Source: Antechinus flavipes (taxonomy: Eukaryota). From it: a stretch of 64,000 nt of DNA. The notes below the pieces were generated by a model. That model was not told the origin of the DNA. It saw only the letters and a list, made by a program, of their open reading frames with translations, and did not search any database. Positions 7,000 through 57,085 of this stretch are shown here, piece after piece. The number at the start of each line of letters is the position of its first letter. The stretch's first letter is position 1. The position numbers and the translations under genes are program-made. The stretch covers positions 85,808,001 to 85,872,000 of the forward strand of contig NC_067404.1 of the NCBI RefSeq assembly GCF_016432865.1, read 5' to 3'.

Positions 7000-8450
7000 C
7001 AGAGACCAAACCCTATGGCAACAGGCGTCCCCCAGGGGCCTCAGTTTCTTCCCCTGGAAAATGAAGGAGTTGGGGTTAGGTCCCCGAGGGCCTCAAAGTA
7101 TCTAGGGATAACCTGGGGGAGAGGGAGAGAGAGACAGAGAAGAGCGCAGAGTGGGCCCCCCCACCCCCACCCCCACCCTGCCCGCTCACCCACCTGTCCT
7201 ACTGTGTGCCCGTCTGCCCCGACCCCCGCCCCTCCACGTACCGCTCCCCGGAGCGGTTCCATTCTCGACTGTCCGGCCACCTGCTCGGCTGCCCCTTCAG
7301 GGCCCCCCCAGCCCGGCCCCGGCGCTCCCCCCGTGCCCAGCTCACTCACCAGGCCTGGGTTGGGCCCCCTCGATGTGGCAGGAGAATCGGCCGGGCCTTG
7401 GGGGCCGCGGGGGCCCTGGGCTCCCTGGGGGGGCGGCCCCTCCACTGCCCTGCATCCCGCTGCNNNNNNNNNNNNNNNNNNNNNNNNNNNNNNNNNNNNN
7501 NNNNNNNNNNNNNNNNNNNNNNNNNNNNNNNNNNNNNNNNNNNNNNNNNNNNNNNNNNNNNNNNNNNNNNNNNNNNNNNNNNNNNNNNNNNNNNNTCCCG
7601 CCGCAGCTCCCGGCTCCCAAACCCCGGCGTCCCCAGTGCCCGGCCGCCCGCTAGGGCCGGCCTGCAGCCCCCGTGCACGGGGGGCGGGGGCTGCGGGGGA
7701 CAGCGGCTGGGGTGTGGGGAGCCGCCGAGCCGGGCATGGCGGGGCCGGGCCTGGGGGAGGGGGCCGGGGCCGGGGCGCGACGTAGATCCGGGCGCGGCGG
7801 CTCCGGGGGGCGGCGCCCCCTCCCCGGTATCCGGGGAGGAAGCTGCCGGCGGCTGGCCCCGCAAGGGGCAGGGCCGCGGAGGCGGGCTCTTCGGGGGAAG
7901 GGGGCGCCTGCGCAGGGGCCCCGGGATTCCCCCAAACCCCAAGAGGCTCCCTCCCGGCCGAATCCGCAGAGGACGCGGTCCCTCCCTCCCCACCTCCGCC
8001 GATCGGCCCCTCCCCTTGCTTCCCGAGCCCCCCCCAATCGGTCCCTCCCCTTGTCTTCACCGCCCCCTCCCCATCGACCCCTCCTCTTGTTTCCAGGGCC
8101 CCCAGTCCGCCCCGCCCCCTACCTCCAAGCCCCCCCGCCGTCCCTCCCCCTGCCTCCAAGCCCCTCCCACAGTCCCTCCCCCCATTGGTGCCGCCCCCTG
8201 CCTCCAGCGGGGCGGGGGAAAAGGGGCTCCCAAGGACTCTGCTTCCACAGGTTCTCCAGTCCCGGACCCCCGCCCAGCCCAGCCCCCGCTCTGGTTCACA
8301 CTTGTCTGCACACTCTGTGTCCCTGATCCTTGGTCACACAAAAGGCCGCTGGAAGGCTCTGGCCCCCGTCCCGGGTGTGTATCCGGGGGTGGGGGGCCAA
8401 AGAGCCGGCCTCCGTGGGGGTGGGAGAGGGCAAGTGTTCCTTTGTGTGTG
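7000..8450 (-). promoter_or_regulatory. CpG island / promoter and first exon of an unidentified minus-strand gene
   Basis: Very high GC and CpG density, GC boxes (ccgccccgcccc ~8107), G-runs, and a strong minus-strand donor CTG|GTGAGT at 7350/7349. An N gap hides 7464-7595. Confidence 0.75.
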
Positions 8451-8562
8451 TGTGTGCGCGCGCGCGCGCGCCTGTGTGTACGCGTGTGCCTGTGTGTGTG
8501 CGTGTGCCTGTGTGCGTGTGCGTGTGTGTGTGTCTGTGTGTGTGCGCCCGCATGCGTGTGCA
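8443..8562. repeat. Alternating purine-pyrimidine (GT/GC) tract, potential Z-DNA
   Basis: (tg)n running into (cg)n, then mixed tg/cg/ca alternation for ~120 bp at the edge of the CpG island. Confidence 0.85.
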
Positions 8563-10729
8563 TCTTCGTCTGACTTGAGGCTGTGGGCATGCGGTGTGGG
8601 GCTGTTCCTTTCCTCCCAGTATCCCCGGATGTTCCCCGGGACTCCCCAACCGGGCTCCCTAAGACTTGGGTGGGTCCTCGCGATCCCGGGCAGACCAGCA
8701 CTGCCCCCCATGTGCGGAGACCGGCTCCAGTAACTGAGTCAGGGCCCAGCGGGGTCAGAGAAATGAAGGCCGGAGCCGGAGGGGCCAGCTAGGGCAGGAG
8801 CAGGATGGCCTCCCCGCACCCAGAGGCCGGCCCCCCGGGCACCCCACCTGCTAGGGCCGCTCTCAGCGTTGCCCTCTGGCCTCTCGCAGGATCCAAGGCC
8901 CGTGTTGGGAGGAGCGGAGCAACAGGAGGTCTGCGACAGGCAACGCATTTAGTAAGTACCTACTGTGCGCCAGACCCTGGGTTGAGTGCTTTAAAGTCCT
9001 TGGGAACCGGGGTTCCCCATTTTACAGGGGAGGAGACCCAGGCAAACAACAGTGAAGCCATCAGGGACTCCCCCCTCTCAGAAGCCCCAGGAGTAATGGG
9101 AAGTCAAGTGTTTCCTGCCTCCAGGCCCAGCACTTTCTCCACTAGCACAGCCTCTGGCTGCAGACCCAGTCAGGAAACGGTGACTCCCAGGGCCCCAGTG
9201 CCCCCCCACGGCATCACTTTCTGAGAGTTGTCAGGAGCCGGGGCCATCTGGGAAGGAGCCAGTAGGAGTCAGGGCCTAGAAATGGGGTGTCCCACCCAAG
9301 TGTTCCCCAAGCACAAGTGATCCCGCTGGCCGAGTCCTGACCCCAGGCCGGAGACCACTGACAGCAAAGTGCCTGAGTACTTGGAAGGACCCTTGCCCAG
9401 AGGCCCCTGGAGCCCAGGGTGGGAAGGGGCGAGAAGCAGGGCCAGCTGAGGCGATTTCCAGCCCTGTGCTCTCCAGGGCCCCTGGGCCTCGGTGGCCCAC
9501 CTCAGCTTCGTGGGGCATGCTCAGAACCCGGTGGGTGCCTGGCACCTAGGCTCCTAATCAGGCAAACAGCAGCTCAACCAGGCTGTCATCTGGTGGCCAT
9601 TTCAGGGATTGCAAATACGAGCCAATTCAAACTGGACCATTACCTCAGTGTCCCCTGGCCACAGCTGGGAGCCCTGGCCGGTTAAGGAAGGCACCGCTCA
9701 AGCCATGACAAAAGGTCCCATGGGCAAAGCGCTTCAGGTTTGCACAGAAACTTAAACTTCACCTATATAGTGTGGGGCCTGCCCAGACCCTGAGCTTGCC
9801 TTCCTGGGGGGGGGGGGGTCCTCTTAATAAAATCTTTGGGCCTCAAACCCAGCGTTTCCTGTTGTGACATCAGAGTTTGGCAAATGTCTCGCACTCTAAA
9901 ACCGTGGCAGTGTGGTCTGTGCCCTTCCCTCCTGTGAAGGACAGGCTAAGAGAACCCTGGTGGGAAGTCCAACTTCATGGGAGCAGAGATGGGCACACTC
10001 AAGGCCAGGCCAGCCTTCCTGGCGGCCACGTGCCAACTGGGCCAATGCTGAGCGACAAGGTCTCCAACAAAAGGAGGGGATGACAGAGGACACAGTTTGA
10101 TGGGCATTCTTGAAGTTTCCTACATCCCTTTCTTAAGTCTAGATAATCGAACAGTAAATCAAGCCTTGNNNNNNNNNNNNNNNNNNNNNNNNNNNNNNNN
10201 NNNNNNNNNNNNNNNNNNNNNNNNNNNNNNNNNNNNNNNNNNNNNNNNNNNNNNNNNNNNNNNNNNNNNNNNNNNNNNNNNNNNNNNNNNNNNNNNNNNN
10301 NNNNNNNNNNNNNNNNNNNNNNNNNNNNNNNNNNNNNNNNNNNNNNNNNNNNNNNNNNNNNNNNNNNNNNNNNNNNNNNNNNNNNNNNNNNNNNNNNNNN
10401 NNNNNNNNNNNNNNNNNNNNNNNNNNNNNNNNNNNNNNNNNNNNNNNNNNNNNNNNNNNNNNNNNNNNNNNNNNNNNNNNNNNNNNNNNNNNNNNNNNNN
10501 NNNNNNNNNNNNNNNNNNNNNNNNNNNNNNNNNNNNNNNNNNNNNNNNNNNNNNNNNNNNNNNNNNNNNNNNNNNNNNNNNNNNNNNNNNNNNNNNNNNN
10601 NNNNNNNNNNNNNNNNNNNNNNNNNTAGTACTTCATCACAATCATATACCACAGCTTGTTTAACCATTCCCCAATTGATGGGCTTCTCCTCAATTTCCAA
10701 TTCTTTCTCACCTCAAAAATAGCTACTAC

Positions 10730-10770
<41 letters not shown>

Positions 10771-11469
10771 AGTGTAAACCATTTACACCAAACAGAAAGT
10801 GACTATTCTTTTTTAAAAATTCTACACAGACATAAAGAGCCCTTGCCATCTTTGAGAGAAAACCAGAGCAGCTCCATTTCACAAATGATGGCATAATTAA
10901 AGCTAAATAATACAAAAATAATTCGAAAAAACATTCCTGTGTACCTTACATTCTCACATAAATCAAGAAGGATAAATGATGCTCTTTTCAAATGGCTGGG
11001 AAAATGTGTGTCTCCCGGGTTGGGCTTTGGGAGTTCAGTTCCGTGTAACCCCATAAGTGTCCATGTATGTGTCTTGTCAGATGTGCATACTCGAGGGAGA
11101 ATAGAGGCTGCTGACCTGTTTATTTAGTTCTAACTTTTAAGCTACTTGACTGATACGCGCTCGAAACAATGGCAACACGGTTGCTTATTTGAAATACTAA
11201 GAACTTGTATTCATTTGTTTGGCTTGTAAAGGGCTGAAATATTACCGAGAATATAATCTAACTTTGCCTTTAAAGAATATGACCCTCGAGAACTCATTCT
11301 GAGTTCCAGAGTGAGTGACTTTTTGTTTGCCTTCTGGGTCAACGGGCAGATTTTTTTAGATGAATTGCAAAATTTGAGGAGTTAAATTTTCAGGGGCCCT
11401 GGATTTTCAACTGTCAGGGTCAAACGTGTTTCCTTGTATTGGCTCCCCTTGAGCAGAAGATAACTACCG

Positions 11470-12920: not shown

Positions 12921-15270
12921 ATGGGGGAGGATTCTGGTAAGATGGCAAAGCAGATTGGTAAATTTCAGGCTCTCTAGATTTTCCCCACAAACAACAAATT
13001 CACACTTTAGGACGACCCTAAACTGGTGAAAAATCCAAAAGACTTGGGGCAGAAGTGGGATCCTCCTGGCACAACCCAAGCAGATCTGAAGAAAGACCCT
13101 GGGCTGGAATTAACCTGTGTGAAGTGTGAACAGCTCCGGACTAGTTCTACACAAACGCCTAGTACAGACCCTTGGGGCTAGCTGGGCTTGGCTAGAGCCT
13201 CAGCAGGAACCACAGAGACTTTCACCTCTGGGACAGCGTGAGGAGTTGGGGGAAGAGTTGGGGAATGCATTGGAGAGATCGAGGGACCCTGGGCTGATTG
13301 GGAACACCAGGCCCAGCTGTGGTGTTGAGACGCAGCCCTGGGTGAGAAGGAGCCAGCGCACCAGGAGTGCAGAGGCAGGGGGCAGGGATAAAGCTGGCTT
13401 CGGGCACCTGCTGGAGGGGGGAGCTTTTGGTTTGGAATTCCAGGTCAGAGGGGAGAGCTCAAGTGAGCTCCCCACCCCACTATTGGTGTGCTTACACTAA
13501 TACTTCTCATCCCAAAAAAAAAAAAAAAGTGAACCAGCAAAGAAAAAAGAATCCAATCATAGAAATTTATTATGGTAATAGCATTAGGATTGGGGTTCAT
13601 CTTCAGAGGAGGACACTGAAGTAAAAAAAGCTTCTATCCTAAAGAGTATTGTTAAATGGCTCCCTGCCCAGAGAGAATTTGTACAAGAAATAAAAAAAAT
13701 CAAATGAGAAATATTGAGGCAAAACAAAAATAAATAAAATTGAATAAAATAATAAAAATTTTTTTAAAATGATCCAAGAAAACTAAGATTATGAAAAAAG
13801 TTATTCAATTAGAAAAGGAGATACAAAGTCTTAAAGAAGAAAATAACTCTTTGAAAATTAGAGTAGGGCAAGGGGAAGCCAGTGAAGCTATGAGAGACCA
13901 AGAAATAACAAAACAGATTATAAAGAATGAAAAGATAGAACAGAATGTGAGGCATCTTCTAAGAAAAACAACAGATCAAGAAGAGAAAACGTAAGAATAA
14001 TTGGACTATCTGAAAGTTGAGACCAAAAAAAGAACCTGGACACAATAATGCAATAACATTGTTCTGAAATGATAGAACAGAAGGGGAAAATAGAAATAGA
14101 AAAAACAATCTACTGTTCAACACACCATCTCAAAGAGATCTTTTGGGGAAAACACTTAGGAACATTATTGCCAAATTTCAAAAAGCCCAGATCAAAGAGA
14201 CAATTTTGAAAAAAAAAAAAAAACAAAACAAAAAACTAATTCAAATATGCTGAGCTACAATTAGAATTATACTGTACTTAGCAGCCATAATAAAAGATTG
14301 CAGGTCCTGGAATCATATCTACCCACAATCAAAAGAACTAGACTTGCAGCCAAAAATATCCTATTCAGCAAAATTATCTATAATATTAAATGAGAAAAAA
14401 ATGGACGTTGAACAAACTTGTAGATTTTCAGGACGTTCTATCAATCAAACCCAAACTTAATAGAAAATTTGACATATAAGAGCTAATACCAAAGATCAGT
14501 TTTAAGGAACTCAACATGGACAAATTGTTGATTTTTTTTAACATGGAAAATTTATACGTATGTTTAAGATTGACGTCAACAATAGGATAGCTCAAAAGAA
14601 AGATTGGGGTAGAGTTAAGGTAAAAAATAGTAATCCTGTTATACAAATGAGGTGTGGAGGAAGAATAGCCACAGAGGTATTAGAAGGGAGAGGAGTTCGG
14701 AAAACCTACTCGAATCCGGAATGGGTTCAATAGACAGTGCTACATATATAATGTGAAGGGTATAGCAACCTCCAAAATCTATAAAGAAATAATATGGCAG
14801 GGATGGGCAAAGGGTGAGGGAAGAGGACAGGTAGGGATAAATTAAGTAATAGCAAGGCAAGTTAGGAGCTAAATTAAAGCAAAGAGTTAATAGGGGTATG
14901 TATATGGGAGGTGGGGTGGAGTGTATGTATGTATATATCTATATATGTATACATAAATGTATCCTTTCTGAACGATAGCCTGCCTGGGGCTGATAGAGGG
15001 GATGAAAGGGGCGGAAAAGAATAAAGAAAAAGGGTATGCAGCAGAGAACAGAACAACACTTTACAAGGAAGTAAAGAAAAGATGATCACTCATGAATATG
15101 ATTTCTTCCACTAATATATATATACTTTATTGAACTGGGAATTTGTTGTTATATATTTTGAATCCCTTCTGATGTTCTGCTGGATATATGACAATGTTCT
15201 CTTTTGTTTTGTACTGCTTTTCTGTTAAAAAAAAGAAACATGAAAATAATAAAAAGAAATCTATAAACAA
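12921..15270 (+). mobile_element. HAL1-like (half-L1) element: L1-type 5' end and decayed ORF1, no ORF2, A-rich tail
   Basis: Starts gggggaggattctggtaagatggc (G-run and YY1-like AAGATGGC). ORF1 coiled-coil remnant at 13791-13994 (LEKEIQSLKEENNSLKIRVGQ...), then a purine-rich spacer and an A-rich end with no endonuclease/RT sequence. Possible degenerate TSD aagaaatagata / aagaaatctata. Confidence 0.7.
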
Positions 15271-15299: not shown

Positions 15300-17130
15300 A
15301 ATAATTTATTTTTTTATTGAATAGTATTTTTTCTCTAGTTACATGTCAAAATTTTTTTAGTATTCATTCTTTTATTTTATTTTATTTTTTTTTTGCTGAG
15401 GCAATTGTTCATTCTTACCATATTTCGCATTCCAAATTTCCCCCCTCTTCTCCCCTCTAGTTTATGCATGTGCTATCATGTAAAACACATTTTCATATTA
15501 GTCACAGTTGTAAAAAAAAAAAAAAAAGGAAACAGATCAAAAGGGGGAAAAAAAACATGAGAAAGAATAAGGTAAACAAAGACAAATCTGCTTCAATCTG
15601 CATTCAGAGTCCATCAGCTCTTGGTGTGGACGGAGATGGCATTTTCCTTCCTGAACTCTTTGTACTTGTCTTAGAACACTGTGTTTCAGAGAAGAGTAGA
15701 GTCATTCATAATTGATCATCACACACAGTTGCTGATACTGTGTCTGATGTTTTCCTGGTTCTGCTCATTTCACTTTACATCAGTTCCTACAGGTCTTTCC
15801 AGTTTTTCCGAAATCTGCCTGTTCATTATTTCTTCTTGCCCAATAGTATTGTTACATTCATATGCTATGGCTTCTTCAGCTGTTCCCCAATTGATGGCTA
15901 TTCCCTCAATTTTTAATTCTTTGCCGCCATGAAAAAGGCTGCTATAAATATTTTTGCACACGCAGGTCCTTTTGTTGTGGGAGACCATTTGATTCAATGG
16001 CGGAATGAGAAGATTCACACGGGATTCTCTTTCAGTCAGAGTTTTAAGAGGATCAAGTAGCCTCATTGGCAATGTGGGTCGGGGAAGAATGCTTATAGTC
16101 CATAAATCTGGCTCTAAGCCATAGTTAGGAATAGTAAAATCTCTATAGCAAGGCAGAGGTTGTTAGAAATAGTGTCTTTTTAGAGAGTAGCCTAGGACTT
16201 ATTGAACACAAAAATAGAACATCTATATGGTTGCCTGGGTTCAAGGAACAGTTACTCGAGTAGCATTCCTTCTGTGGCCTTAGCAGGCCTAAATAGGATT
16301 TTATCAGTGATTTTTTGAGGATTACTACTTTAGAATATAGTTTGAGATCTGGTATTGCTAGGCCACCTTCCTTTGTATTTTTTTCTCATTAATGACCTTG
16401 ATATTCTTGGCCTTTTTTCCTTCCAGATGGATTTTGTTATTTCTTCTAGTTCTATCCATAATTTTGGGATAGTTTTGTTAGAATCCTTACAAGCTGTTAA
16501 GTCATTAGAATTGATAGAGACAATAATTATCTAATTTAGCATGGTTCAGTATGATTGATCTGATCCTATAAGGAGATGTTATGGGCCAGAACTTGAAACA
16601 AGCTACTAAGTGGAACTGATAGAAACAAGGCTTGTGTTCACACCTTTAGAGAGCTCATATAAGCAAGAAGCTCTTAGGGCCACAGAGCACTCTGGGACAG
16701 ACACAGAGCACTCTGGAAGATACAGAAGGCCACAAGCCCACTCTCGGAGGTGGAGTCAGATTCATTTCATCTTCCACCTTTGTGCTGGCTGGAGCCTGAA
16801 GAAAGCAGAGACAAAGGTCAAGCTGCAAGAGCTCTTGGAACCAAGCAGAAAGATAAGCCTCTAAGAAAGCTAACCGGACCCAAGAAAAGAAATGAGAAAT
16901 AAATGTTTGGATTTTATCAGCTGGCTGTATTTGGAGTGATTATAACTCTGAACTGAAACTAAGGCTGCTTCCAGAAAACCTCCCCAAGAAACCTGCTCCC
17001 AGAGAGAACCATTATATTTTAAAGAAGAGAACACCACATAGTTTGATTGATATGGCACTAAATAAGTAAATTACTTTAGGCAAGATGGCCATTTTTTTAT
17101 TATATCGTCCTCTCTTTTGGAGTCATGAAT
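15300..17130 (-). mobile_element. Old L1 3' fragment (antisense), interrupted by a solo LTR and a ~20 bp WSINE1 3' stub at ~15385-15406
   Basis: Antisense L1 3'UTR/ORF2 signatures (cattcagagtccatcag, ttccccaattgatgg, ggccaccttcctttgta). The L1 text rejoins across the LTR at the TSD. Confidence 0.8.
16476..17038 (+). mobile_element. Solo LTR with 6-bp TSD (TAGTTT)
   Basis: TG...CA termini (TGTTAG...CACCACA), flanked by TAGTTT at 16470-16475 and 17039-17044. AATAAA at ~16898; the host L1 sequence is continuous once the LTR is removed. Confidence 0.9.
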
Positions 17131-17469
17131 GTCTTTGATTGAGTAAAGAAAGAGAATGCTGGGATTGGTTAAGAGTCCATCTAAGCTCCCCAACACCGAA
17201 CCCAACGCCAACACCTATGGGACCTCCCTTGAAGTTGTGAACAGTCTGATGGAATGAAACCACTCTCCAACTCGAGACAGATTGGAAGGACTTCAAGAAA
17301 GATCAGTCTCCCTGGGGTGAAAGGGGTGTTCAGCCCCACTCAGAGGCTATCAGGAAGAGCCAGTGAGAGGATCTCTCACCAAAGGAGTCCTTTTGTCCTG
17401 GCTTAGTAGCAGATCAGATCAGTGACACAGCCTTCAGTCCCAGGACAGGCAAGCCTTTGAAAGGCAAAT

Positions 17470-20400
17470 GGCCAGCCTGAGAAACCAGGCTGTGGCCTGG
17501 AAAAAGCAGGCACAGCTACCCACTCTGTGAGCAAGACACTGAACACAAGGGGCCCCTGGCAAATTGTCAACTAGGGAAACCAGCAGGGCTACCCCCTATT
17601 GTGAGCAAGACACCAAATACAAGGGGCCCCTGGCAAATTACAAACTGGAGAACCCAGGCTGTTTTCTGGAGAGAGCAGGCAGGACTACCCCATGCTGTGA
17701 GTAATACTCCAAACACAAGGGGCCCCTGGCAAATTGTCAACCTGGGAAACCAGGCTGTTTCCTAGAAAGAATAGACAGGACAATCTCCTCCTGAAAGCAA
17801 GGGGTCCCTGGCAAATTCTTACCCAAGAAACCCAATCAGGGCTACTCCTTGATGTAAAACTGCCTGCATGGTAAACCAGCAGGGTTATCTCCTGCTGTGC
17901 ATAAGACCCCCAAACAAAAGCGGTCCCTGTAACACTGCCAATTTGGGAACCTAAGTTGTTTTCTGGAGAGACCAGGAAAAGATACTGCAATACACCAAAC
18001 ACAAAGGGCCCCTGGCAAATATCTTACCTGGGATGCAGGGCTACCCCCTGCTGTGAGTAAGCTACCAAACATAAATGGCCCCTGGAAAATTGCCAGCTCT
18101 GGAAACCAGGCTGTTTTCTGGAGAGAACAAGCAGGGCTACCCCCTGCTGTGAGCAAGACACCAAGCAAAAAGGGTCACTGGAAAATTGCTAGTTCTGCAA
18201 ACCAGGCTTTTTTCTGGTGAGAACAAGCAGGTCTATCCCATGTGGGCAGTAAGACAAGGAGCCCATGTAAAATAGCCAACCAAGGAAACCAGCATGATTA
18301 TCCCCTGATGTGAACAAGGTACCAAACACAAGGGGCCCCTGAGAAATTGCCAACTTGGGAAACAGGCAGGCTACCCCCTACTGTGAGTAATACCCTGAAA
18401 CACAAGGAGGCCTTGGAAAGTCAAACTGTTTTTTGGGAGAGCGCAGGAAGATAGCCGGCTATCCCCTGCTGTGAGGAAGGCACAACGAGGTCTCTGGCAA
18501 AATGCCAACTCAGAAAATCATATTTTTCTGTAGGGGGGGCAGGGCTACCCCCTGCTATGAGAAATATTCCAAACACAAGGGGTCCCTGGAAAATTTCTAG
18601 CTCTGGAAACCAGGTTGTTTTCTAAAGATAACAGGCAGGTCTATTCCCTGCTGAGAGTAAGACAAGGAGCCCATGTAAAATTGTCAATCTAGGAAACCAG
18701 TTTGGGTACCCCTACTGTGAGCAAGACACCAAACACAGGGAGCCTTTGGGAAATTGCCAACTTGGGACACCAGCAGGATACCCCCTACTGTGAGTGTGAG
18801 GGGCTTCTTACTCATAACAGGAGGAAAACATAACAAGCTCTGCCTGTTCTTTCCAGAACCTGGGTTCCCAGGTTGCAATTTACCAGTGAACCCTTGCTCA
18901 CACCAGCAGGTAAACATGCCCCCTCTCTCCAAATCTTTCTTTGGGACTGCTTTCCCAAGTTGGCAATTTTCCAGGGATCCCTCCTTTGATCCCTGGGGAG
19001 GATCTAGCAGGGAGAAGTCTTGCTGGTGTCTTGGACTGGCAGTTTCCCAGGGGTTCCTTATGTTTGGTGTCTGGTTCACAGCTGGTACCTTTTCTTGCCC
19101 TCTCCAGAAAACAGCCTGGGTTCTCAGGATGGTAGTGTTCCAAGATCCCCTTGGGTTTGCTACCTTGCTGACAGCAGGGGGTAGCCTCGCTGGTTTCCTG
19201 GATTGAGAGTTTCCTAGGGTCCTCATGTGTTTGGTGTCTTGCCCACAGCAGGGGGTAGTCCTGGTTCCAATTCTCCAATGGTCCCTTGTGTTTAGTGTCT
19301 TCCTCACAGCAGGGGGTACCTCTTCCTGCTCTTTCCAGAAAACAGCCCATTTTTCTGGTTTGCAATTTTCCAGGGGTTCCTTCTTTGCTGTCTTGTTCAC
19401 AGCAGGGGATAGTTTTGCTGGTTTCTTGGACTGGAAGTTTCCCAGGGACCCCTTGTGTTTGGTGTATTTCTCACAGTAGAGGGTAGCTCTTCCTGCCCTT
19501 TTCAGCGAACAACCTGGGTTCTCAGGATGGTAGTGTTCCAGGTCCCCTAGTGTGTGGTATCTTGCTCATAGCAAGGGGTTGCCTTGCTGGTTTTTTGGAT
19601 TGCAGTGTCCCAGGGGCCCCTTGGGTTTAGTATCTTGCTCACAGCAGGGAGTAGTCTTGCTGGTTTCCTGGACTGGCAGTTGCCCAGGGGTCCCTTGGGT
19701 TTGGTGGGATGCCCACAGCAGGGGGTAACCCTGGTTCCCATTATCCAAAAGCCCCTTTTATTTGGTGTCTTGCTCACAGCAGGTGGTAGCCATGCTGGTT
19801 TCCTGGGTTGGCTATTTTACACGGGCTCCTTGTCCTCCTTCCAGCAGGGGCAGCCCTGCCTGTGCGCTTCAGAAAAAAGCCTAGTCTCCAGAGCTGCCAA
19901 TTTTCCAGTGGCTCCTCGTGTTTGATATTGTGCCCACAGCAAGGGGTGGCCCTGCCTGTTCTCTCCAGAAAACAGCCTGGTTTGCTAGTTTGCAATTTTC
20001 CAGGGGTCCCTTCTAAATACAATGGACCTCTGGGAAACTGCCCATCCACAAAACCAGCAAGGCTATGCCCTGCTTTGAACAAGACACTGAATACAAGGGG
20101 CCATTGGAATATTGGAATCAGGGTTACTCCCTGTTTTGAGGAAGATACCAAGCACAAGGGGACTCTGGGACACTGCCAACTTGAGAACCCATGCTGTTTT
20201 CTGGAGAGGTCATGAAGAGCTACCCTCTACTGAGAGGTGAGAAATACACCAAATACAAGGGGCCCCTGGGAAACTGCTATTTCACAAAACCAGCAAGAGT
20301 ACCCCCACTGTGAACAAGACATCAAGAAAGGGACCCCTGGAAAATTGCAAACCCAGGAAACCCAAGTTTTTTGGAGAGAAGGACAGGGTTACCCCCTGCT

Positions 20401-23090
20401 GTGAGCAACAGCAAATGACATCCTGGGAATGCAGGCTGTGTTCTGGAGAGAACAGGCAGGCCTACCTCCTGCTGTGGGCAAATGGCCCAGGCAAATTCCT
20501 TGCCAGGGAACCCTGGTTGCCCCCTGCTGTGAGCAAGACACCAAATGCAAGGGACCTGTAGAAAATGGCCAACTTGGAAAACAAGAGTTTTCTGGAAAAG
20601 GGGGGGGGGGGCAGGAAAAAGGCACTCCTCTTGTGAAGAAAGGGCGCCTGGCAAATTTCAACCTGTGAAACCAGGATGTTTTCTGGAGAGAACAGGGAAG
20701 ACCACCCCATGCTAGGAGCAAGATACCAAACACAAGAGACCCCTGAAAAATTGGCAGCTCTGGAGACCAGGCTTTTTTCTGGAGAGAACAGGTAGTACTG
20801 CCCTCTGGTGGGAGCAAGATAAGGAGCCCATGTAAAATTGCCAACCCAGGAAACCAGCATGGCTACCCATGATGTGAACAAGACACCAAGCACAAGGGGT
20901 CTCTGGGAAATTGCCAATTTGGGAGACCAACAGGGTTACCCTTTATTGTAAGACCCCAAACACAAGGAAAGTTACCTATTGGGGAAGCCAGACTGGGAAA
21001 GAGCAGGAAGAGCTTCCCCCTGCTGTGAAGAAGACACCAAGGGGCCTCTGGGAAATTGCAAACTGGGAAAACTAGACTTTTCTGGAGAGAGGGGACAAGC
21101 CTGCCCCCTGCTGTGAGCAATGGTAAAGTGCATCCTGGGAAACCAGGCTATGTTCTGAAGACAACAGGTAGGACTACTATGAACAAAGGGTCCTATGAAC
21201 CCAGGAACCCTGCTGTGAGCAAAACACTAAGGGGCTTCTGGCAAATCGCCAACCCAGGAAACCAGACTTTTCTGGAAAGGGGAGGCAGGGACCCCTGGAA
21301 ATTACTATCCCAGAGTGAAGCAAAATAACAAACGCAAGGGGCCCTTGGATAATTGCCAACTCAAGAAATCAGGAGAGCTACCTCTGCTGTGAGCAAGAGA
21401 CCCCTGACAAATTGCAACCCGGGAAAGTAGGCTATGTTCTGGAGAGAACAGGCAGGGCTGTAGCACCTCCTGCTGTGGGCAAAGGGCCCAGGCAAATTCT
21501 TTGCAGGAATCCAGGTTGCCCACTGCTGTAAGATACCAAACACAAGGGGTCTCTGGGAAATTGCCAATCCAGGAAACCAGCAAAACTTCCCCCTGCTGTG
21601 AGCAAGACACCAAACAAGGGACCCCTGGAAAATTGCAAACTCCGGAAACCAGGCTGTTTTCTGGAGAGAGAGAGGGCTACCCCCTTCTGTCAACAAGACA
21701 CAAGGGGCTCCTGTGACACTGCCAACCTGAGAATCCAGGCTGTTTTCTGCATAGGAAAGGAAGAAGTATTTCCTGTTGTGAACAGGACACTAAACACAAG
21801 GGGCCCCTGGGAAATAGCTGACTTGGGGGAACCAGCAGGGCTACCCTGTACTATGAGTAAGATCCCAAACACAAGGGGCTCTGAAGAATTGTCAATCCAG
21901 TAAACTAGACTTTTCTGGAGAGAGGGCACAGGGTTAGCCCCTACTGTGAGCAAGGGCCCCTTCTAAATTGCAACCTGGAAAACCAGGCTGTTTTCTAAAG
22001 AGAAGACGGAGGATGACCTCTTGCTGTGAACAAGACACCAAACACAAGTTGTTCCTGGAAAATTGCCAACTCAAGAAACCAGCAGGGCTACTCCCTATAG
22101 TGAGTAAGACCCTAAACACAAGGGGCCCTTGAAAATTGCCAATTTGTGAAGCTAGACTGGGAGAGAGCAGGAAGGGCGACTCCCTGCTGTGAGAAAGATC
22201 CTAAACACTAGGGGGCCCTGGAAAACTGCCAACCTGGAAACCAGACTTTTCTGGAAAGAGGAGTTTCCTCCTGCTGTGAGCAAGGGGCCCAGGCAAATTG
22301 CTTACTAGGGAAACCATACATGGCTACCCCTTGTTGTGAGCAAGATATCAAACACAAGAGGTCCCTGTAAAATTGCTAACTGGGAAACTAGGCTATTTTT
22401 TGGACAGAATGGATAGTGTAACCCCCTTCTATGAGCAAGATACAAAGGGGCCACTGGCAAATTGCCAAACCGGGACTTTTCTGCAAGGAAGGGGCAGGGC
22501 TATTCCCTACTGAGAGCAAAGGGCCCTTGGCAAATAACAACCTGGAAAACTCAGCTGTATTCTGAAGAGAACATGTAGGACTACCTCCTGCTGTGAGCAA
22601 AGGGCCCCCAAAATTTCCTTCCCAGGAAACCATGCAGGGATACCTCTTACTGTGAGCAAGATACCAAATACAAGGGGTCCTTGGAAAATTGCAATCAGGG
22701 CTACCCTCTGCTGGGGGTAAGACACCAAACACAAGAAACCCCTGGAAAATTATAACTTTGGAAACCAGGTAGTTCTACTCCCTGGTGGGAGCAAGCCATC
22801 ACACTTGAGTCCCTTGGAAAAATTCCATCTCTGAAAACCAGGCTGTTGTCTGGAGACAGTAGGCAGAGCTACCTATTTGGGAATACCCCCTACTGTAACA
22901 AGACACCAAACACAAAGGGCGCCTGGACAATTGCCAACCCGGGAAATCAGGCTATTTTTTTTTTTTTTTTTTTTTTGCAGACAACAGGGAGGGCTACCAC
23001 TTGTTGTGAATAATACACCATACATAAGGGGCCCCTGAAAAATTGCCCAAATGGGAACCCAGCAGAGCTACTCCCTGCTGTGAGCAGAAC
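17470..23090 (+). repeat. ~5.6 kb degenerate modular tandem array in the L1 5'UTR
   Basis: Repeated consensus CAGGGCTACCCCCTGCTGTGAGCAAG-ACACCAAACAC-AAGGGGCCCCTGGAAAATTGCCAACCTGGGAAAC-[CAGGCTGTTTTCTGGAGAGAA]. One full monomer spans 18035-18130 (96 bp); shorter monomers lack modules. Confidence 0.97.
18799..20012 (-). repeat. Inverted block of the tandem array
   Basis: Monomers read as the reverse complement (cttgctcacagcagggggtag, ttgcaattttccagggg) only in this interval; forward orientation on both sides. Confidence 0.95.
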
Positions 23091-26000
23091 ACAACCATAT
23101 AAAGTCACAAAATAGGAGTGGAGAAAAAGAAAAAAATGAGCAATAAACAGAAATGAACCTTAACTATAGAAAGCCACTATGGTGAAAGGGAAGACTAAAA
23201 AAGCAATTCAGATTAGGACAAAATGCCCACAGGGGAAATCTCAGCGTGATATGAATTGGTCTCAAACCTAAAGAAGCTTCTTAGAAATGTTCATAAAAGA
23301 CTTTAAGAGACAAACAAGAGAGGTAGAAGAAAAATTGGGAAAATAAATGAGAGGTATGTAAAAGAGAGTCAGCACCTTGGAAAAGGAAGGACAAAAATTG
23401 ATTGTCCTTAAAAAATACAATTGATCAAATGCAAAAACAAATCCACTGAAGAAAGCAACACCTTGAAAAGTAGAATTAATCAAATGGAAGAACAATTACA
23501 AAAGCCAACTGAAGAAAATCACATATTTAAAAGTAGAAATGGACAAATCAAAGCTAATGACTCTATGAGACATTAAGAATCATTTAAACAAACTAAAAAA
23601 AGATGGGAAAATGGAAGAAAATATAAAACACCTTATAAAAAAACAAAACAAAACAAAACAGCCGACCTGGAATATAGATGCAGGAGAGACAATTTTAAAA
23701 TTCTTAGTCTACCTGAAGGCCAGGAAAAAAAAGAGACAGAGTCTAGATACCATTCTTCAAGAGATCCTTAAGGAAAACTCACCTAATATAGTAGCAGCCC
23801 AGGGCAAAATAGTTATTGTAAGTATCCATCTATCACATCTGGAAAGAGTTCCCAGAAAGAAGGCGCCCAGAAACATTGTTGCAAAATTCCGGAATGATAC
23901 TCTCAAGATAAAACTACCATAAGTTTCCAGAAAGGAAAACATCAGTTCAGGTATTGAGGAGCCACAATCAGGATTATCCAGGATCTGGCAGCTTTTACTG
24001 TAAAAGTAAAGGATGGGAAGCCCTGGGATACCATATTGCCAAAAGCAAAGGACCTTGGTTTACAACTACGAATCCACTGCCCAATGAGACTGACCATCAT
24101 CCTTCAGGGGTAGAGAGAGAGCTTCAATGAACAAAGGGACTTTGATTCATTCCTCTTGAAAAGATCAGAACTAAACAGAAAAATTGATCTCCAAACACAG
24201 GACTGAAGAGAAGCATAGAAAGATAAATAAGGAATATATATGTAATTATTAATATTAAATATATATGTATACTTATTACTATTATTTAATGGTTAAACTT
24301 TTTACATCCTAGATGGGAAAATGATACCTGTAACTCTTGAGATATGTATCTGTTATTAGAGCAGTTAGAGGGGACATACATGAAAAGAGGGTATGAATAT
24401 GAATGGACTCTGATGTGATGATATCAAAGAAAAAGACATTAAGGGGTAGAAAAAGGATTGTATTGGGAGGAGAGGAAAGGGTAGGTAAAATGGGGCAAAT
24501 TATATCACATGAAGTGGCACAAAAGATCTATTAAAATAGAGGGAAAGAGGGGATGAGTTTGAGCATTATCTGAAGCTTAATCTCATCAGTTTTAGCTCAT
24601 AGAAGGAATAAATATTAACTTACTTGGGTAAAGAAATTTTTCTTACCCTGTAAGGAAGTAGGAGGAGAAAGGGGAAAGAAAAGCGAGGGGTTGGATAAAA
24701 GGGAAGGCAGAGGGCAAGGTTGGTTAAAAACAAAATACTACTAAGGGCAAGGTTGGTTAAAAACAAAATACTACTAAAGAGGGACAGGGTGAAAAGAGAG
24801 AACAAAAATATATACAGGGAAGAAAATAAGATGCAGTGAAATACACAGATGGTAATCATAACTCTGAATGTGAATGGGACAACCTCGCCCATAAAACAGA
24901 AGGGAATAGCAGAGTGGATTAAGAAACAATCCTACAATATTGTGTTTTTAATTTTTTTTTTTTTAACAAGAAACATATTTGAAACAAAAAGACACATACA
25001 ACGAAAGGGTCAAAGGCTGGAGCAGAATTTTTTATGCTTCAGCTGAAGCAAAAAAAAAAAAAATCAGGAATAGTCATTCTGGTCTCAGAAAAAGCAAAAG
25101 TCAAAATAGATCTAATCAAAAGAAATAAGGAAGGAAGCTACATCTTGTTAAAGGGTACCATAGACAATGAAGTTGTATTGATGCTGAATGTGTATATCCA
25201 CCAAGTGGTAGAGCATCCAAATTCTTAAAGAAGAAGTTAAGCCACTTACAGGAAGAAATAGACAGCAAAACCATAGCTGGGCATCTTCAGCCTTCCCATC
25301 TTGGAATTAGATAAATCTAATCACAAAATAAACAAGAAAGAAACTAGGGAGGTTAATAGAATCCTAGAAAACTTAGATATGATAGACCTCTGGAAAAAAT
25401 TGAATAGGGACAGAAAGGAATACACCTTTTTCTCAACAGTATAGGGCATCTATACAACAAATTCTCCATATATTTGAGCATAAAAACCTCACAATCAAAT
25501 GCAAAAAGGCAGAAATAGTAAATGCTTCCTTTTCAGACCATGATGCAATAAAAATTATATTCAATTAAGGGCAAGACAAAGACTGGTAATCAGTTGGAAA
25601 TTAAATAAAGTAATTCTAAATAATGAGTGGGTCAAACAATAAATCATAAAATCATAAAAACAATAATTTCATCCAAGAGAATGATGGCAATGAGGCAACA
25701 TACCCAAACCTATGGGATGCAGTCAAAGCAGTTCTCAGGGGAAATTTTATCTCTAAATAGTTATATGAATAAAATAGAGAAAGAGGAGATCAATGAATTT
25801 CACATGCTAAACTAAAAAAGCTAAAAAAATAAAAAATTAAACCCTCATTAAATACCAAATAAGAAATTCTGAAATTCAAAGGAGAGATTAATAAAATTAA
25901 AACTAAGAAAACTATTGAACTAATTAATTAAACTAAGAGTTGGTTTTATGAAAAAAAAATAGACAAACCTTTGGTTAATTTGATCAGAAAAAGGAAAGGA

Positions 26001-26535
26001 AAAAACCAAATTACCAGAATCAAAAATGAAAAGGGTGAACTTAGCACCAATGAAGAAGAAATTAAAGCAATAACTAGGAACTATTTTGCCGAACTATATG
26101 CCAGGAAATCTGACAATCTAATTGAAATGGATGAATATTTACAAAAATAAGAAAAATAACTCCAGGGCCAGATGGATTTACAAGTGAATTCTACCAAACA
26201 TTTAAAGAACAATTAATTCCATTACTATGTAAACTATTTGAAAAAAATAGGTGAAGAAGGAAACTTGCCAAATTCCTTCTATGACACAAATATGGTATTG
26301 ATACCTAAACCAGGAAGAGCCAAAACAGATAAAAAAAATTACAGATCAATCTCTCTAATGAATATAGAAGCAAAAATTTAAAATAAAATATTAGCAAAGA
26401 GATTACAACAACTTATCAACAGGATAATACACTATGACCAAGTGGTATTTATACCAGGAATCCAGGACTGGTTCAGTATCAAGAAAACTATTGCCATAAT
26501 TTACCATATCAAAACAAAACAAACAGAAATCATAG

Positions 26536-27022
26536 TGATGCGGGAAAGCTTGCTTTCTAGATTCCCACCCTCTCCTAGTTAATAATGTAAATTGCCCTTT
26601 AACTCACAAATCCTGGTCCCTTTGAATTCCAATAGAAGATCTGACCTGTTCCCAGCCCCACCCAGATATGAGCCAACTTTGGGGCTACACCCGAAAGCCC
26701 CTCGAGCTAAGTCTCCTATTATAAAAAGGCCATGCTGGGAACCCCTCTTTGCAGAGATTCCAAACAAGGCTACCATGTGAGGACCCTCTGTCCACTGGAC
26801 CCTCTATCCAGTGCCCTCCTTATCTTTACCTTCACCTATACTTTAACTTTGCTTATCTAATAATAAACCTCTTTTATTAATCTAGCTCTCTGGGCCAATA
26901 AATGCTTTTATTGGGAACTCCCGCCGCTACTAGACCCCCCCTTGTGTTGAATCTGTACCCCAAACCTGCCACTAGACCTTAACCCTAATTTCATTTAGGT
27001 ACCCCAAAGCTAGACCTCAACA
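26536..27022 (+). mobile_element. Solo LTR with 4-bp TSD (ATAG), ERV1-like, inserted in L1 ORF2
   Basis: TGATG...CAACA termini, ATAG at 26532-26535 and 27023-27026, TATA-like tattataaaa at ~26717 and downstream AATAAA. The host L1 (aacagaaatcata...tcaatagatgcagaaaaagc) is continuous across it. Confidence 0.9.
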
Positions 27023-28281
27023 ATAGGACAACCTCAATAGATGCAGAAAAAGCTTTTGACAAAATACAGCACTTATCCCTATTAAAAACATTAGAGAACA
27101 CAGGAATAAAAGGAGTTTTCCTTAAACGTTTATTTAAAACCATCACCAAGCATTATTTGTAGTGGAGAAAAGCTGGATACATTCTCCGTAAGATCAGGGG
27201 GAAACAAGGATGCCCATTATCATCACTATTATTCAGTTTTGTACCAGAAATGTTGGCTTTAGCAATAAGAAAAGGAAAAGAAATGAAAGGAATTAGAATA
27301 GGCAATGAGGAAATATAACTATTTCTCTTTGCAGGTAATATGATGGCATACTTAGTCCTAGAGAATTATCCCAAAGCCTACTTGAAAGAACCCATTAACA
27401 AGAAATAGAGAAATTCCATGTAAAATTACTGCAGACAAAATAAAATACTTGGGGATCTACCTGCCAAGACAAACTCAGGAATTATATGAACACAATTACA
27501 AAATACTTCTCACAGAAATAAAATCAGATCTAAACAATTGGAAAAATAGCAATTGCTCACGAGTAGGCCAAGCTAATATAATAAAAATTTCAATTCTGCC
27601 TATACTGGTCTAGTTTTTCAATTGCCAATAAATTTTTTTATAGAGCTAGAAAAAATAACAATCAGATCCATCTGGATGAACAAAAGGTCAAGAATATCAA
27701 GGGAATTAATGAAAAAAATACAAAGGATAGGGGCCTACCAATTCTAGACCTAAAACTCTATTATAAAGCAGAAGTCATGAAAAACATATGGTACTGGCTA
27801 AGAAATAGCATGGTGGATCAGTGGAATAGTTTAGATACAGATGATGCAATAATCAATAATTATAGCAATCTAGTATTTGATAAACCCCCAAATTCCAGCT
27901 TTTGGAATAGGATGTCATTATTTGACAAAAATTGCTGGGAAAACTAGAAAATAATGTGTCAGAAACTTGGCATAGACCTACATCTTTCACCCCATACCAA
28001 AATAAGGTCAAAATGGGGACATGATTTGGGCATAAAGGGTGATACCATAAGCAAATTAGAAGAGCAAGGGATAATTTACCTATCAGACCTTTGGGAAAGG
28101 AAGGAACTGATGATCAAAGAAGAAATAGAGAACAATATGAAAGACAAAATGGACAACTTTGTGTTAAATTAAAAAGTTTTTGCACAAACAAAATCAACAC
28201 AGCCAAGATTAGAAGGGAAGCACAAAACTGGGAAATTTTTTTTTTTTTTTTTTTACAACCAGTGTTTCTGATAAAGGCCTC

Positions 28282-28803
28282 ATATGAAAGAAATTTCTTT
28301 CTTGCTTGCTTGCTTTCTTTCTTGCTTGCTTTCTTTTTCTTCCTTCCTTCCTTTTTTTTTAAGCAAAAAGTTAAATTGTTTAAATTATAATGAAAACAGT
28401 GGCATTATATATCCTAATTTAGAGATGTAATATTATATCAAAATATCAAGGATTCTTTTCTTTTCTTTTCTTTTAATTAAAGCTTTTTATTTTCAAAATA
28501 TATACATGGATAATTTTCACCTTACAAAACCTTGAGTTCTAATTTTTTCCTTCCTTTTCCCCCACCCCCTGCCATAGATAGCATGTTAATATATGTTAAA
28601 CATATGCAATTCTTCTATACATATTTCTACAAATATCATTCTGCACTAGAAAAATCAGATCAATAAGGAAAAAATGAGAAAGAAAAAAATGCAAGCAAAG
28701 AACAACAAAAAGAGTGAAAATACTATGTTGTGGTCCACATTCAGTTTCCACAGTCTTCTTTCTGGGTGCAGATGACTTTCTTCATCACAAGACCATTGGA
28801 ATT
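28282..28803 (-). mobile_element. 5'-truncated L1 3' end with a possible 3' transduction, inserted in the host L1
   Basis: Antisense L1 3'UTR at 28475-28803, two T-rich tails separated by ~115 bp of non-L1 AT-rich DNA, and aggcctc repeated at 28275-28281 and 28804-28810. Confidence 0.75.
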
Positions 28804-29390
28804 AGGCCTCGTTTCTAAAATATATAAAGTGTATCAAAATTATAAGAATTTAAGTCATTCCCAAATGGATAAATTGTCAAAGGACATGAACAAACAATTT
28901 TCAGATGAAGAAATTAAAGCTATCTATAGTCATATGAAAAAAATGCTCTACATCACTATTGATTAGAGAAATGGAAATAAATTAAAATATCTCTGAGGTA
29001 CCACTTCACACCTCTCAGATTGGCTAAGATGACAGGAGAAGATAATGATAAGTGTTGGAGGAGATGTGGGAAAATTGGGATATTAATGCATTGTTGGTGG
29101 AGTTGTGGAGAGTAATACCATTCTGGAGAGTAATATGGAACTATGCCCAAAGGGCTACACTGTGCATACCCTTTGATCCCATAGTGACATGTTTGGGTCT
29201 GTATCGCAAGGAAATCATAAAGGAGGAAAAAGGATCCACATGTGTAAAAATGTTTATAGCAGCTCTTTTTGTGGTGGTGAAAATTGGAAAATGAGTAGAT
29301 GCTCATCAGTTGGGAATGGCTGAATAAGTTGTGATATATGAAGATAATAGAATATTATTGTTCTATAAAAATTATGAACAAGCTAATTTA

Positions 29391-29877
29391 TTTACTTTTT
29401 TTCCAAGGGTCAATTCTTTTTTTTTTTTTTTTTTTAAATAACTTTTTATTTACAGAACCCATGGCAGGGTAATTTTTTACAACATTATCCCTTGCACTAA
29501 CTTCTGTTCCGATATTTCCCCTCCCTCTCTCCACCCCCTCCCCCAGATGGAAGGCAGTTCTATACATGTTAAATATGTCACAGTATATCCTAGATACAAT
29601 ATATGTGTGCAGAACCAAACAGTTCTCTTGTTGCACAGGGAGAATTGGATTCCAAAGATATAAATAACCCGGGAAGAAAAACAAAAATGCAAGCAGTTTA
29701 CATTCATTTGCCTGTGTTCTTTCTTTGGGTGTAGCTGCTTCTGTCCATCCTTGATAAATTGAAAGTGAGTTAGATCTCTTTGTCAAAGAAATCCACTTCC
29801 ATCAGAATACATCTTCATACAGTATCGTTGTTGAGGTATATAATGATCTTCTGGTTCTGCTCATTTCACTTAGCATC
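29391..29877 (-). mobile_element. Young 5'-truncated L1 (3'UTR only) with 17-bp TSD
   Basis: Poly-T followed by antisense dasyurid-type L1 3'UTR; atgaacaagctaattta at 29374-29390 and 29878-29894. Confidence 0.9.
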
Positions 29878-29894
29878 ATGAACAAGCTAATTTA

Positions 29895-32723
29895 AAAAAA
29901 TAAAAAAAATAATTATAACTTTTTATTTACAGAACCCATGCCTGGGTAATTTTTTACAACATTATCCCTTGAACTCACTTCTGTTCCGACTTTTCCCCTC
30001 CCTCCCTCCACCCCCTCCCCCAGATGGCAAGCAGTCCTATATATGTTAAATATGTCACAGTATATCCTAGATACAATATATGTGTGCAGGACCGAACAGT
30101 TCTCTAGTTGCACAGGAAGAATAGGATTCAGAAGGTAAAAAAAACCCAGGAAGAAAAACAAAAATGCAAACAGTTTACATTCATTTCCCAGTGTTCTTTC
30201 TTTGGGTGTAGTTGCTTCTGTCCATCATTGATCAATTGAAACTGAATTAGATCTTCTCTTTGTTGAAGAAATCCACTTCCATCAGAATACATCCTCATAC
30301 AGTATTGTTGTTGAAGTATATAATGATCTCCCGGTTCTGCTCATTTCACTCAGCATCAGTTCATGTAAGTCTCTCCAAGCCTCTCTGTATTCATCCTGCT
30401 GGTCATTCCTTACAGAACAATAATATTCCATAACATTCATATACCACAATTTACCCAACCATTCTCCAATTGATGGACATCCATTCATTTTCCAATTTCT
30501 AGCCACTACAAACAGGGCTGCCACAAACATTTTGGCACATGCAGGTCTCTTTCTCTTCTTTAGTATCTGTTTGGGGTATAAGCCCAGTAGTTGCAATGCT
30601 GGATCAAAGGGTATGCACAATTTGATAACTTTTTGGGCATAATTCCAGATTGTTCTCCAGAATGGTTGGATTCATTCACAACTCCACCAACAATGCATCA
30701 GTGTCCCAGTTTTCCCACATCCCCTCCAACATTCATCATTATTTTTTCCTGTCATTTTAGCCAATCTGACAGGTGTGTAGTGGTATCTCAGAGTTGTCTT
30801 AATTTGCATTTCTCTGATCAATAGTGATTTGGAACACTCTTTCATATGAGTGGAAATAGTTTCAATTTCATCATCTGAAAATTGTCTATTCATATCCTTT
30901 GACCATGTATCAATTGGAGAATGGCTTGATTTCTCATAAATTAGAATCAATTCTCTCTATATTTTGGAAATGAGGCCTTTATCAGAGCCTTTAACTGTGA
31001 AGATGTTTTCCCAGTTTGTTGCTTCCCTTCTAACCTTGTTTTCATTAGTTTTGTTTGTACAAAGGCTTTTTAATTTGATGTAATCAAAATTTTCTATTTT
31101 GTGATCAGTAATGGTCTCTAGTTCATCTTTGGTCACACATTCTTCCTCCTCCACAAGTCTGAGAGGTAAACTATCCTATGTTCCTCTAATTTATTTATGA
31201 TCTCGTTCTTTATGCCTAAATCATGGACCCATTTTGATCATATCTTGATATATGGTGTTAAGTGTGGGTCCATGCCTAATTTCTCCCATACTAATTTCCA
31301 GTTTTCCCAGCAGTTTTTGTCAAATAATGAATTCTTATCCCCAAAGTTAGGATCTTTGGGTTTGTCAAACACTAGATTGCTATAGTTGACTGTTTTGTCT
31401 TGTGAACCTAACCTATTCCACTGATCAACTAATCTATTTCTTAGCCAATACCTAATGGCTTTGGAGACTGCTGCTTTATAATATAGTTTTAGATCAGGTA
31501 CAGCTAGGCCACCTTCATTTGATTTTTTTCATTAATTCCCTTGAGATTGTCGACCTTTTGTTCTTCATGTAAATTTTGTTGTTATTTTTCTACGTCATTA
31601 AAATATTTTCTTGGAAGTCTGATTGGTATAGCACTAAATAAATAGATTAGTTTAGAGAGTACTATCATCTTTATTATATTCGCTCAGCCTATCCAAGAGC
31701 ATTTAATATTTTTCCAATTATTTAAATCTGACTTTATTTGTGTGGAAAGTTTTTTTGTAATTTTGCTCATACAATTCCTGACTTTCCTTTGGTAGATAAA
31801 TTCCCAAATATTTTATGCTATCAACAGTTATTTTGAATGGAATTTCTCTTTGTATCTCTTGCTGTTGGATTTTGTTGGTGATGTCTAAAAATGCTCAGGA
31901 TTTACATGGATTTATTTTGTATCCTGCAACTTTGCTAAAGTTATGAATTATTTCTAATAGCTTTTTAGTAGAATCTCTGGGGTTCTCTAAGTATACCATC
32001 ATATCATCTGCAAAGAGTGATAGTTTGGTTTCCTCATTACCTACTCTAATTCCTTTAATCTCTTTCTCTGCTCTTATTGCCGAGGCTAGCATTTCTAATA
32101 CAATATTGAATAATAATGGTGATAGTGGGCAACCTTGTTTCACTACTGATCTTACTGGGAAAGGTTCCAGTTTTTCCCCATTGCATATGATGCTTACTGA
32201 GGTTTTAAATATATGCTCCTGACTATTTTAAGGAAAAGTCCATTTATTCCTATGCTCTCAAGTGTTTTTATTAGGAACGGATGTTGGATTTTATCAAATG
32301 CTTTTTCTGCATCTATTGAGATGATCATATGGTTTTTGTTAATTTGGTTATTGATAGAGTCAATTATGCTAATAATTTTCCTAATATTGAACCAGCCCTG
32401 CATTCCTGGTATAAATCCTACTTGGTCATAGTGTATTATCCTGGGGATGATTTTCTGTAGTCTTTTTGCTAATATCTTATTTAAGATTTTAGCATCAATA
32501 TTCATTAGGGAGTTGGTCTATAATTTTCTTTCTCTATTTTCAACCTACCTGGTTTAGGTTTCATATCTGTTTCATAAAAGGAATTTGGTAGGACTCCTTC
32601 AATCCCTATTTTTTCAAATAGTTTATATAGCATTGTAGTTAATTGTTCTTTAAATGTTTGGTAGAATTCACATGTAAATCCATCTGGTCCTGGGGATTTT
32701 TTCTTAGGGAGTTGGTTAATAGC
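29895..32723 (-). mobile_element. Younger 5'-truncated L1 (~2.8 kb, RT to 3'UTR)
   Basis: Minus ORFs give clear L1 ORF2 pieces: [17 protein letters not shown]...[25 protein letters not shown]...[20 protein letters not shown]...YYCSVRND. Frameshifted; the TSD motif tgaacaagctaattt recurs at 32724-32738. Confidence 0.95.
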
Positions 32724-56984: not shown

Positions 56985-57085
56985 GAGAAGGCATTTTTTA
57001 GCACTCTCTAGCCCTCCCCCTTCTCCCTCCTCCCGGCACCGAGGACTAGAGCTAGAACATCCTTTAATAGAGGATGAGAGGGACG

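Follow-up and report, generated by a model that had tools for sequence, protein, structure and literature searches.

The 64,000-nucleotide window of the Antechinus flavipes genome analysed here (NCBI RefSeq assembly GCF_016432865.1, contig NC_067404.1, positions 85,808,001 to 85,872,000 of the forward strand; coordinates below are positions within it) contains a decayed plus-strand L1 retrotransposon preceded by a 5.6-kb tandem array of 69 short monomers, which very probably forms, together with a non-repeated leader, a single L1 5′ untranslated region (5′UTR) of about 6.0 kb. L1 5′UTRs are often replaced, and promoters designed as tandem monomers are known mainly from rodents; the locus is an extreme, old, single-copy marsupial example of known phenomena. 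We favour, as the probable account overall, an L1 family with a 5′UTR of few short monomers, of which this copy or its source expanded by ~60 units and afterwards decayed.

The array and the element that carries it

A monomer profile made from 7 well-kept 96-bp seed units and searched against the whole window with nhmmer gave 69 matches (E 3e-30 to 3e-3), all of them within 17463–23092, where they span 5098 of 5630 bp; the remaining ~58 kb of the window gave zero. A first-pass annotation, made from the sequence alone, had estimated 60–70 monomers by length, in a ~6 kb 5′UTR between an L1-type 5′ end at 17140 and the start of ORF1; the count agrees with that estimate, and the extent of the array together with an ORF1 ATG at 23136 gives the same 5′UTR length. 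The 3′ limit stands, the last monomer ending at 23092, and the start that we place within 17115–17140 lies near the proposed 5′ limit. Its text did not contain the orientation of the units: 54 monomers are on the plus strand and 15 on the minus strand, the latter as one block at 18844–20015. The features in order are:

16313–17114, minus strand: L1 ORF2 fragment in the upstream flank, outside the element (tblastx and blastn to the window's L1 copies)
17115–17462, plus strand: non-repetitive leader, assigned to the 5′ end of the L1 5′UTR; exact 5′ end within 17115–17140
17463–18796, plus strand: array part 1; 16 nhmmer profile matches and a truncated unit at the inversion junction
18797–20015, minus strand: inverted block of the array; 15 minus-strand nhmmer matches at 18844–20015, a switch of AT skew and inverted-repeat pairs
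20016–23092, plus strand: array part 3; 38 nhmmer profile matches
23093–23135, plus strand: A-rich tether from the last monomer to ORF1; 43 bp, read directly
23136–24290, plus strand: decayed L1 ORF1; codon 7 is a stop, and further stops and frameshifts follow (Pfam, phmmer, tblastn)
24291–29389, plus strand: intergenic spacer and decayed ORF2 (reverse transcriptase motifs, a weak RVT_1 match, DNA identity to the window's L1s)

Unit size is 75–96 bp, with a long form of ~95 bp, a short form of ~74 bp that lacks the 3′ 21 bp, and several further forms with internal deletions; the palindromic core AGGGGCCCCT is present in every monomer. Tandem Repeats Finder (TRF) reports local arrays with periods of 96, 89 and 73, and a repeat-family search of the array yields families of 32, 15, 14 and 13 copies that are 60–80% alike, along with many inverted pairs. 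GC content is 50%, against 34–36% in the L1 coding part, the observed/expected CpG ratio is 0.054, and homopolymer runs occur in part 3 (G11 at 20602–20612, T22 at 22957–22978). Because 96- and 75-bp units are multiples of three, spurious open reading frames (ORFs) of 110–238 amino acids lie on both strands of the array at 18.7–22.7 kb (e.g. 18684–19400, minus strand), and a gene caller could take them for genes. A word search of a protein database with the 238-residue translation found no match, and an exact scan of metagenome contigs for a 21-nt monomer core gave 0 matches.

The element behind this array is a fixed, long-dead, essentially full-length plus-strand L1 that shows both an ORF1 with RRM/Transposase_22 and a same-strand downstream ORF2 with reverse transcriptase, and its arrangement is of the rodent type, with tandem monomers directly upstream of ORF1 and a short tether between. 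Pfam Transposase_22 (PF02994) matches ORF1 at E 2.4e-4 and 21.8 bits, just below the 22.4-bit cut-off, and marsupial ORF1-like proteins are placed at 23218–24284 by tblastn (E down to 2e-33). A full HMMER (phmmer) search with a 117-residue piece of ORF1 returned 13 relatives, six without a name and two with archive identifiers only, the named ones being L1 ORF1-like proteins of Sminthopsis crassicaudata, Macrotis lagotis and Monodelphis domestica; a word search with the same piece found no match. The ORF2 remnant retains the reverse transcriptase motifs PGPDGF (26162), IPKPG (26301) and QGCPLS (27205), a weak RVT_1 match (E 0.0019) and 74–84% DNA identity with other L1 copies in the window up to 29389, and Pfam did not recover its endonuclease domain. 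Nested insertions break the element at ~28284–28803, within ORF2, and again after 29389. Among these insertions (28284–28803 and 29390–31000) are a CTTT-type microsatellite and, on the minus strand, repeats starting with poly(T); between 27 and 43 kb the window is densely packed with nested L1 fragments of either orientation.

The leader begins within 17115–17140 because the minus-strand ORF2 fragment reaches ~17114. Logan contigs of four runs (organisms A, D, E and F) were placed on 17000–22999 with an 80% likeness cut-off, their depth not being a copy number, and they reveal the leader as a member of a high-copy dispersed family. Summed contig depth over 17200–17399 is 20474, against 13.8 for single-copy sequence; from 17243 onward over 170 contigs can be aligned, and their consensus upstream of that point still belongs to this family. 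At other loci, many contigs pass from the leader (17269–17344) straight into monomers, and others connect one monomer with another. From this contig evidence, and from position and orientation, we consider it very likely that leader and monomers are parts of one L1 5′UTR.

The upstream flank has a history of its own. The older minus-strand ORF2 fragment consists of 16313–16465 and 17039–17114, with matching peptides KMAILPKVIYLFSAISIKL and KNTKEGGLAIPDLKLY, and is divided by a 573-bp insertion (16466–17038). Many contigs stop at 17038 with variable AT-rich flanks, so this insertion is the end of a high-copy repeat, and the loose ends at 17038/17040 mark its boundary. An occurrence of CAAGATGGC at 17083–17091 was rejected as the L1 start, as it lies within the minus-strand fragment and differs there from the family sequence. 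Twin priming was likewise rejected for the head-to-head L1 fragment, the inverted piece being ORF2 sequence upstream of a complete 5′UTR. A second L1 of a different family occupies 12924–14476 on the plus strand, with a textbook start (GGGGGAGGA...TAAGATGGC at 12924), a GC-rich 5′UTR of ~600 bp without monomers, and ORF1 from ~13530; at least two unrelated types of L1 5′UTR therefore coexist in the genome.

Standard monomer number and origin of the array

Depth along the array is strongly uneven. The 200-bp bins over 17400–18199 stand at 450, 1470, 20 and 840, and depth is mostly 30–100 times single copy over the opening ~750 bp of the array, against 1.5–27 times over the rest; after 18200 the values are 19–380, and the bins at 17800–17999, 18800–18999, 20000–20399 and 21200–21399 are at ~1.4–1.6 times single copy. 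Such depth is not drawn by monomers further in that resemble the consensus (18539, 20697, 21582), so the excess belongs to the first units specifically. A paralogous contig matches 18037–18157 at 93% identity, and the best unit inside the array is at most 86% like that monomer. The first monomers are thus closer to copies at other loci than to any other unit of the array, which speaks against the proposal of the first-pass annotation that a single 5′UTR motif was amplified in situ. We infer that the normal 5′UTR of the family probably consists of the leader, ~9 monomers (17463 to ~18225) and the tether, ~1.1–1.2 kb in all, and the simplest reading of the remaining ~4.9 kb is that only this copy, or a rare sub-lineage, has it.

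Alternatively, the long array could be a family trait: ~60–70 monomers would have been present in an active dasyurid L1 subfamily, passed on in full to this copy by retrotransposition, and carried by further copies as well. Divergence from the monomer consensus (~0.155 per monomer) is somewhat greater than the private branch of the L1 body (~0.105 in a three-copy ORF2 comparison), which hints at some diversity before insertion; most array bins are also above single-copy depth, and sister copies would fall near the cut-off for contigs. We nevertheless regard a family trait as unlikely, given that depth falls 20- to 100-fold past the first ~750 bp and reaches ~1.4–1.6 times single copy in several bins, that published full-length dasyurid L1 copies measure 6.4–6.8 kb with a 5′UTR of 1158 nt (PMC4408412), and that no monomer occurs in 105 kb of Sminthopsis sequence. 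Those 105 kb are two loci (L001 and L002) taken from the matches of the HMMER search with ORF1; they contain neither monomers nor leader, and their ORF1-like genes are only ~64% alike at the DNA level. L002 carries, at 10001–11176 (Sminthopsis crassicaudata), an intact single-exon L1 ORF1-like gene of 391 amino acids, annotated as an uncharacterised protein. A 42-bp unit occurs 2.6 times within its coding sequence, and L001 has a first exon that is nearly identical; the gene could be an ORF1 that was active until recently or one that has been domesticated.

Several points weigh against the expansion of a short-monomer 5′UTR as we propose it. The standard monomer number comes from contig depth and from the consensus length of another dasyurid, the joints between leader and monomers and among monomers being observed at other loci and no other copy being read directly from end to end; sister copies with the same long array would be only ~77–81% alike, and the 80% cut-off could miss them. 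The leader shows no recognisable canonical L1 start (GGGGAGG...AAGATGGC), and the canonical YY1-box form, a G-rich run followed by CAAGATGGC, is absent from 17115–17160; the 5′ end of the element may be decayed or slightly truncated. Similarity between the leader and the 5′UTR of the window's second L1 does not exceed that of shuffled controls, as is to be expected because L1 5′UTRs are often unrelated between families (PMC5381506), and the identification of the leader as an L1 5′ end is, without that likeness, indirect. Neither a poly(A) tail nor a target-site duplication was found, and no direct repeat of the 5′ junction lies beside an A-rich tail.

The unrecognised start, the lack of significant likeness to the second 5′UTR and the missing target-site duplication would also suit an array that is not L1-derived but comes from an unrelated minisatellite, or from repeats inside a different transposon, and happens to abut a 5′-truncated L1. 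We consider such a chance neighbour highly unlikely, as the N-terminus of ORF1 is complete, same-orientation monomers reach to 43 bp before its ATG, and the leader belongs to a dispersed family that is joined to monomers at other loci. Moreover, 50% GC is typical of mammalian L1 5′UTRs, and it is known that different L1 families can have 5′UTRs without homology to each other (PMC5381506).

A marsupial L1 lineage with a monomeric promoter had been one of two explanations offered in the first-pass annotation. Its structural half, a monomer-built marsupial L1 5′UTR, persists as the best reading, given the shared orientation, the 43-bp distance to the ATG and the leader–monomer joints elsewhere. 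Its functional half we hold only tentatively: a dasyurid L1 lineage with a truly monomer-built promoter, of at least ~9 units of 75–96 bp with the core AGGGGCCCCT, that arose independently of rodents and whose monomer number can reach ~70 in single copies, is possible and somewhat less probable than its absence.

Age, orthologues and growth of the array

Contigs from the same organism and from three related ones can be compared along the array:

Organism A (same organism): word share 0.90, divergence ~0; contigs 17313–19773 (0 differences) and 19747–22946 (1 mismatch, 1 gap), depth 13–14
Organism D: word share 0.49, divergence ~2.2%; collinear, 92 bp missing at 18449–18540
Organism E: word share 0.29, divergence ~3.3%; collinear, ~173 unmatched letters before 20015
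Organism F: word share 0.15, divergence ~5.5%; collinear, 74 bp missing at 17526–17599 and 70 bp missing at 21519–21588

The two organism A contigs together cover 17313–22946 at single-copy depth, both inversion junctions included; the left junction is spanned by contigs of A, D, E and F, the right by those of A and F, with 176 extra letters in F. Differences between species within the array are monomer-sized insertions or deletions only, and the array was near its present length, with its inversion, before these organisms split. Its divergence in organism F is 5–6%, against 4–6% in the adjacent leader. Organisms E and F have ~173–176 extra letters (~two monomers), lacking here, exactly at 20014–20020, so the right junction was remodelled after the inversion; the palindromic core AGGGGCCCCT beside it may have favoured the strand switch.

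Within the array, monomer pairwise identity over profile columns averages 0.714 (5th–95th percentile 0.61–0.81) and is constant at lags from 1 to 30, with no neighbour effect, and there are neither young duplicates nor signs of homogenisation. A recent higher-order repeat was considered and rejected, as long self-alignments of the array are just 57–64% identical. A three-monomer block occurs four times (18131, 18539, 19955 on the minus strand, and 20697) at 66–78% identity, the pair of units at 20456 and 21454 reaches 89%, and subtypes with common deletions recur along the array; the recurring subtypes and the repeated block together indicate growth by duplication of multi-monomer blocks. The median identity of a monomer to its best partner is ~0.84, or ~0.08–0.09 per lineage, which, set beside the body branch of ~0.105, suggests duplications about as old as the insertion.

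The second explanation in the first-pass annotation was a snapshot of a satellite being born from a retrotransposon promoter. In that scenario one L1 5′UTR motif, amplified in situ, would be expanding and homogenising recently or even now. Units in tandem and species that differ by monomer-sized insertions or deletions are what it would produce. The data otherwise conflict with it, however, and we judge it very improbable: identity averages 71% without a neighbour effect or recent duplication, the CpG ratio (0.05) is that of an old sequence rather than a young one, array length is near-equal, and the inversion shared, in organisms diverged by ~5.5%, and the nearest relatives of the first monomers lie at other loci, not within the array. 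A satellite is homogenised and abundant; at 71% identity, with most of its bins near single-copy depth and no other array in the window or in the 105 kb of Sminthopsis, this array has neither spread nor been homogenised, and it is therefore not a satellite. Misassembly, a worry raised in advance because repeats are prone to it and one sharpened by the chance that the organism A run is the sample behind the assembly, can be set aside almost entirely: the contigs of A at single-copy depth and those of the three other organisms (three studies in all) are collinear over the array and both inversion junctions, its monomers are diverged enough that 31-mers are unique, and the array is therefore real and neither inflated nor mis-joined.

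Returning to the expansion of a short-monomer 5′UTR, we infer the following course for it. The element would have had the layout of leader, monomers, 43-bp tether and ORF1, in a family that ordinarily carries a short run of ~9 monomers of 75–96 bp. In this copy or its immediate source, blocks of one to several monomers would have been duplicated repeatedly, likely by unequal exchange or replication slippage, for a gain of ~60 units and 4.9 kb around the time of insertion. A 1.2-kb stretch would have been inverted after the expansion, and the array would have become static once its monomers had drifted apart, save for a few monomer-sized insertions or deletions, with later decay as neutral, methylated DNA. 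There is no sign of present function: the array and the adjacent leader diverge between species at similar rates, almost no CpG is left, and the parent element is dead. By analogy with the monomers of rodent L1, those of this array may have had promoter activity in the past.

Outside the element, the window is GC-rich at 5900–10900 and 57000–63500, and numerous long ORFs lie there on either strand, so that these stretches may be CpG islands or exons; two runs of N lie at 7464–7595 and 10169–10625.

Significance and comparison with known systems

On the reading that we favour, this copy shows that a marsupial L1 5′UTR is also built of short monomers and is able to expand about seven-fold, and it provides a dated example of a tandem array within a transposon whose growth came in a burst and ceased as the units drifted apart; it has no bearing on satellite birth in progress. 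As one dead copy its value is descriptive unless the monomer structure is confirmed at the level of the family. If a monomer-built dasyurid lineage proved true, marsupial L1 would offer a second natural system in which to study the driving and limiting effects of monomer number on L1 transcription. Family-level mammalian L1 5′UTRs range from 906 to 3229 bp, the longest recorded being that of cow at 3.2 kb (PMC5381506); the ~6 kb found here is about double that.

Pieces of transposons that turned into tandem repeats or satellites have been reviewed (PMC6947457, PMC9659126), an example being the L1-derived PROsat of Phodopus. These share with the present array the head-to-tail amplification of an internal piece of a retrotransposon, whereas ours is one array, located within the element it came from, that has neither spread as an array nor been homogenised.

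The monomeric L1 5′UTRs of mouse (A, Tf and Gf monomers of ~200 bp) and rat (~650 bp) (PMC5381506) resemble this element in that tandem monomers make up most of the 5′UTR, that a short non-repeated tether leads to ORF1, and that monomer number can vary from copy to copy. In contrast to them, the units here are far shorter, at 75–96 bp, and unrelated in sequence, a non-repeated leader of ~330 bp stands in front, and this copy has 69 units over 5.6 kb where rodent copies have a handful; the array has no CpG island now, and its promoter role is putative. In the L1 5′UTRs of opossum, horse, elephant and hyrax a motif of 70–100 bp is duplicated two or three times, three times in opossum (PMC5381506). 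Unit size and position in the 5′UTR are the same as here, and the opossum is also a marsupial, but there are two or three copies against our 69, and the likeness drawn here is one of unit size and position.

L1-1_SH, the youngest L1 consensus of the Tasmanian devil, is 6676 nt long with a 5′UTR of 1158 nt, and its clean full-length copies measure 6432–6762 nt (PMC4408412). It shares with the element described here a dasyurid host and a long spacer between ORF1 and ORF2. Its 5′UTR of 1158 nt contrasts with our ~6.0 kb as a whole, whereas the portion of this copy made up of leader, ~9 opening monomers and tether comes to ~1.15 kb and so lies, in a comparison of length only, near the 5′UTR of L1-1_SH.

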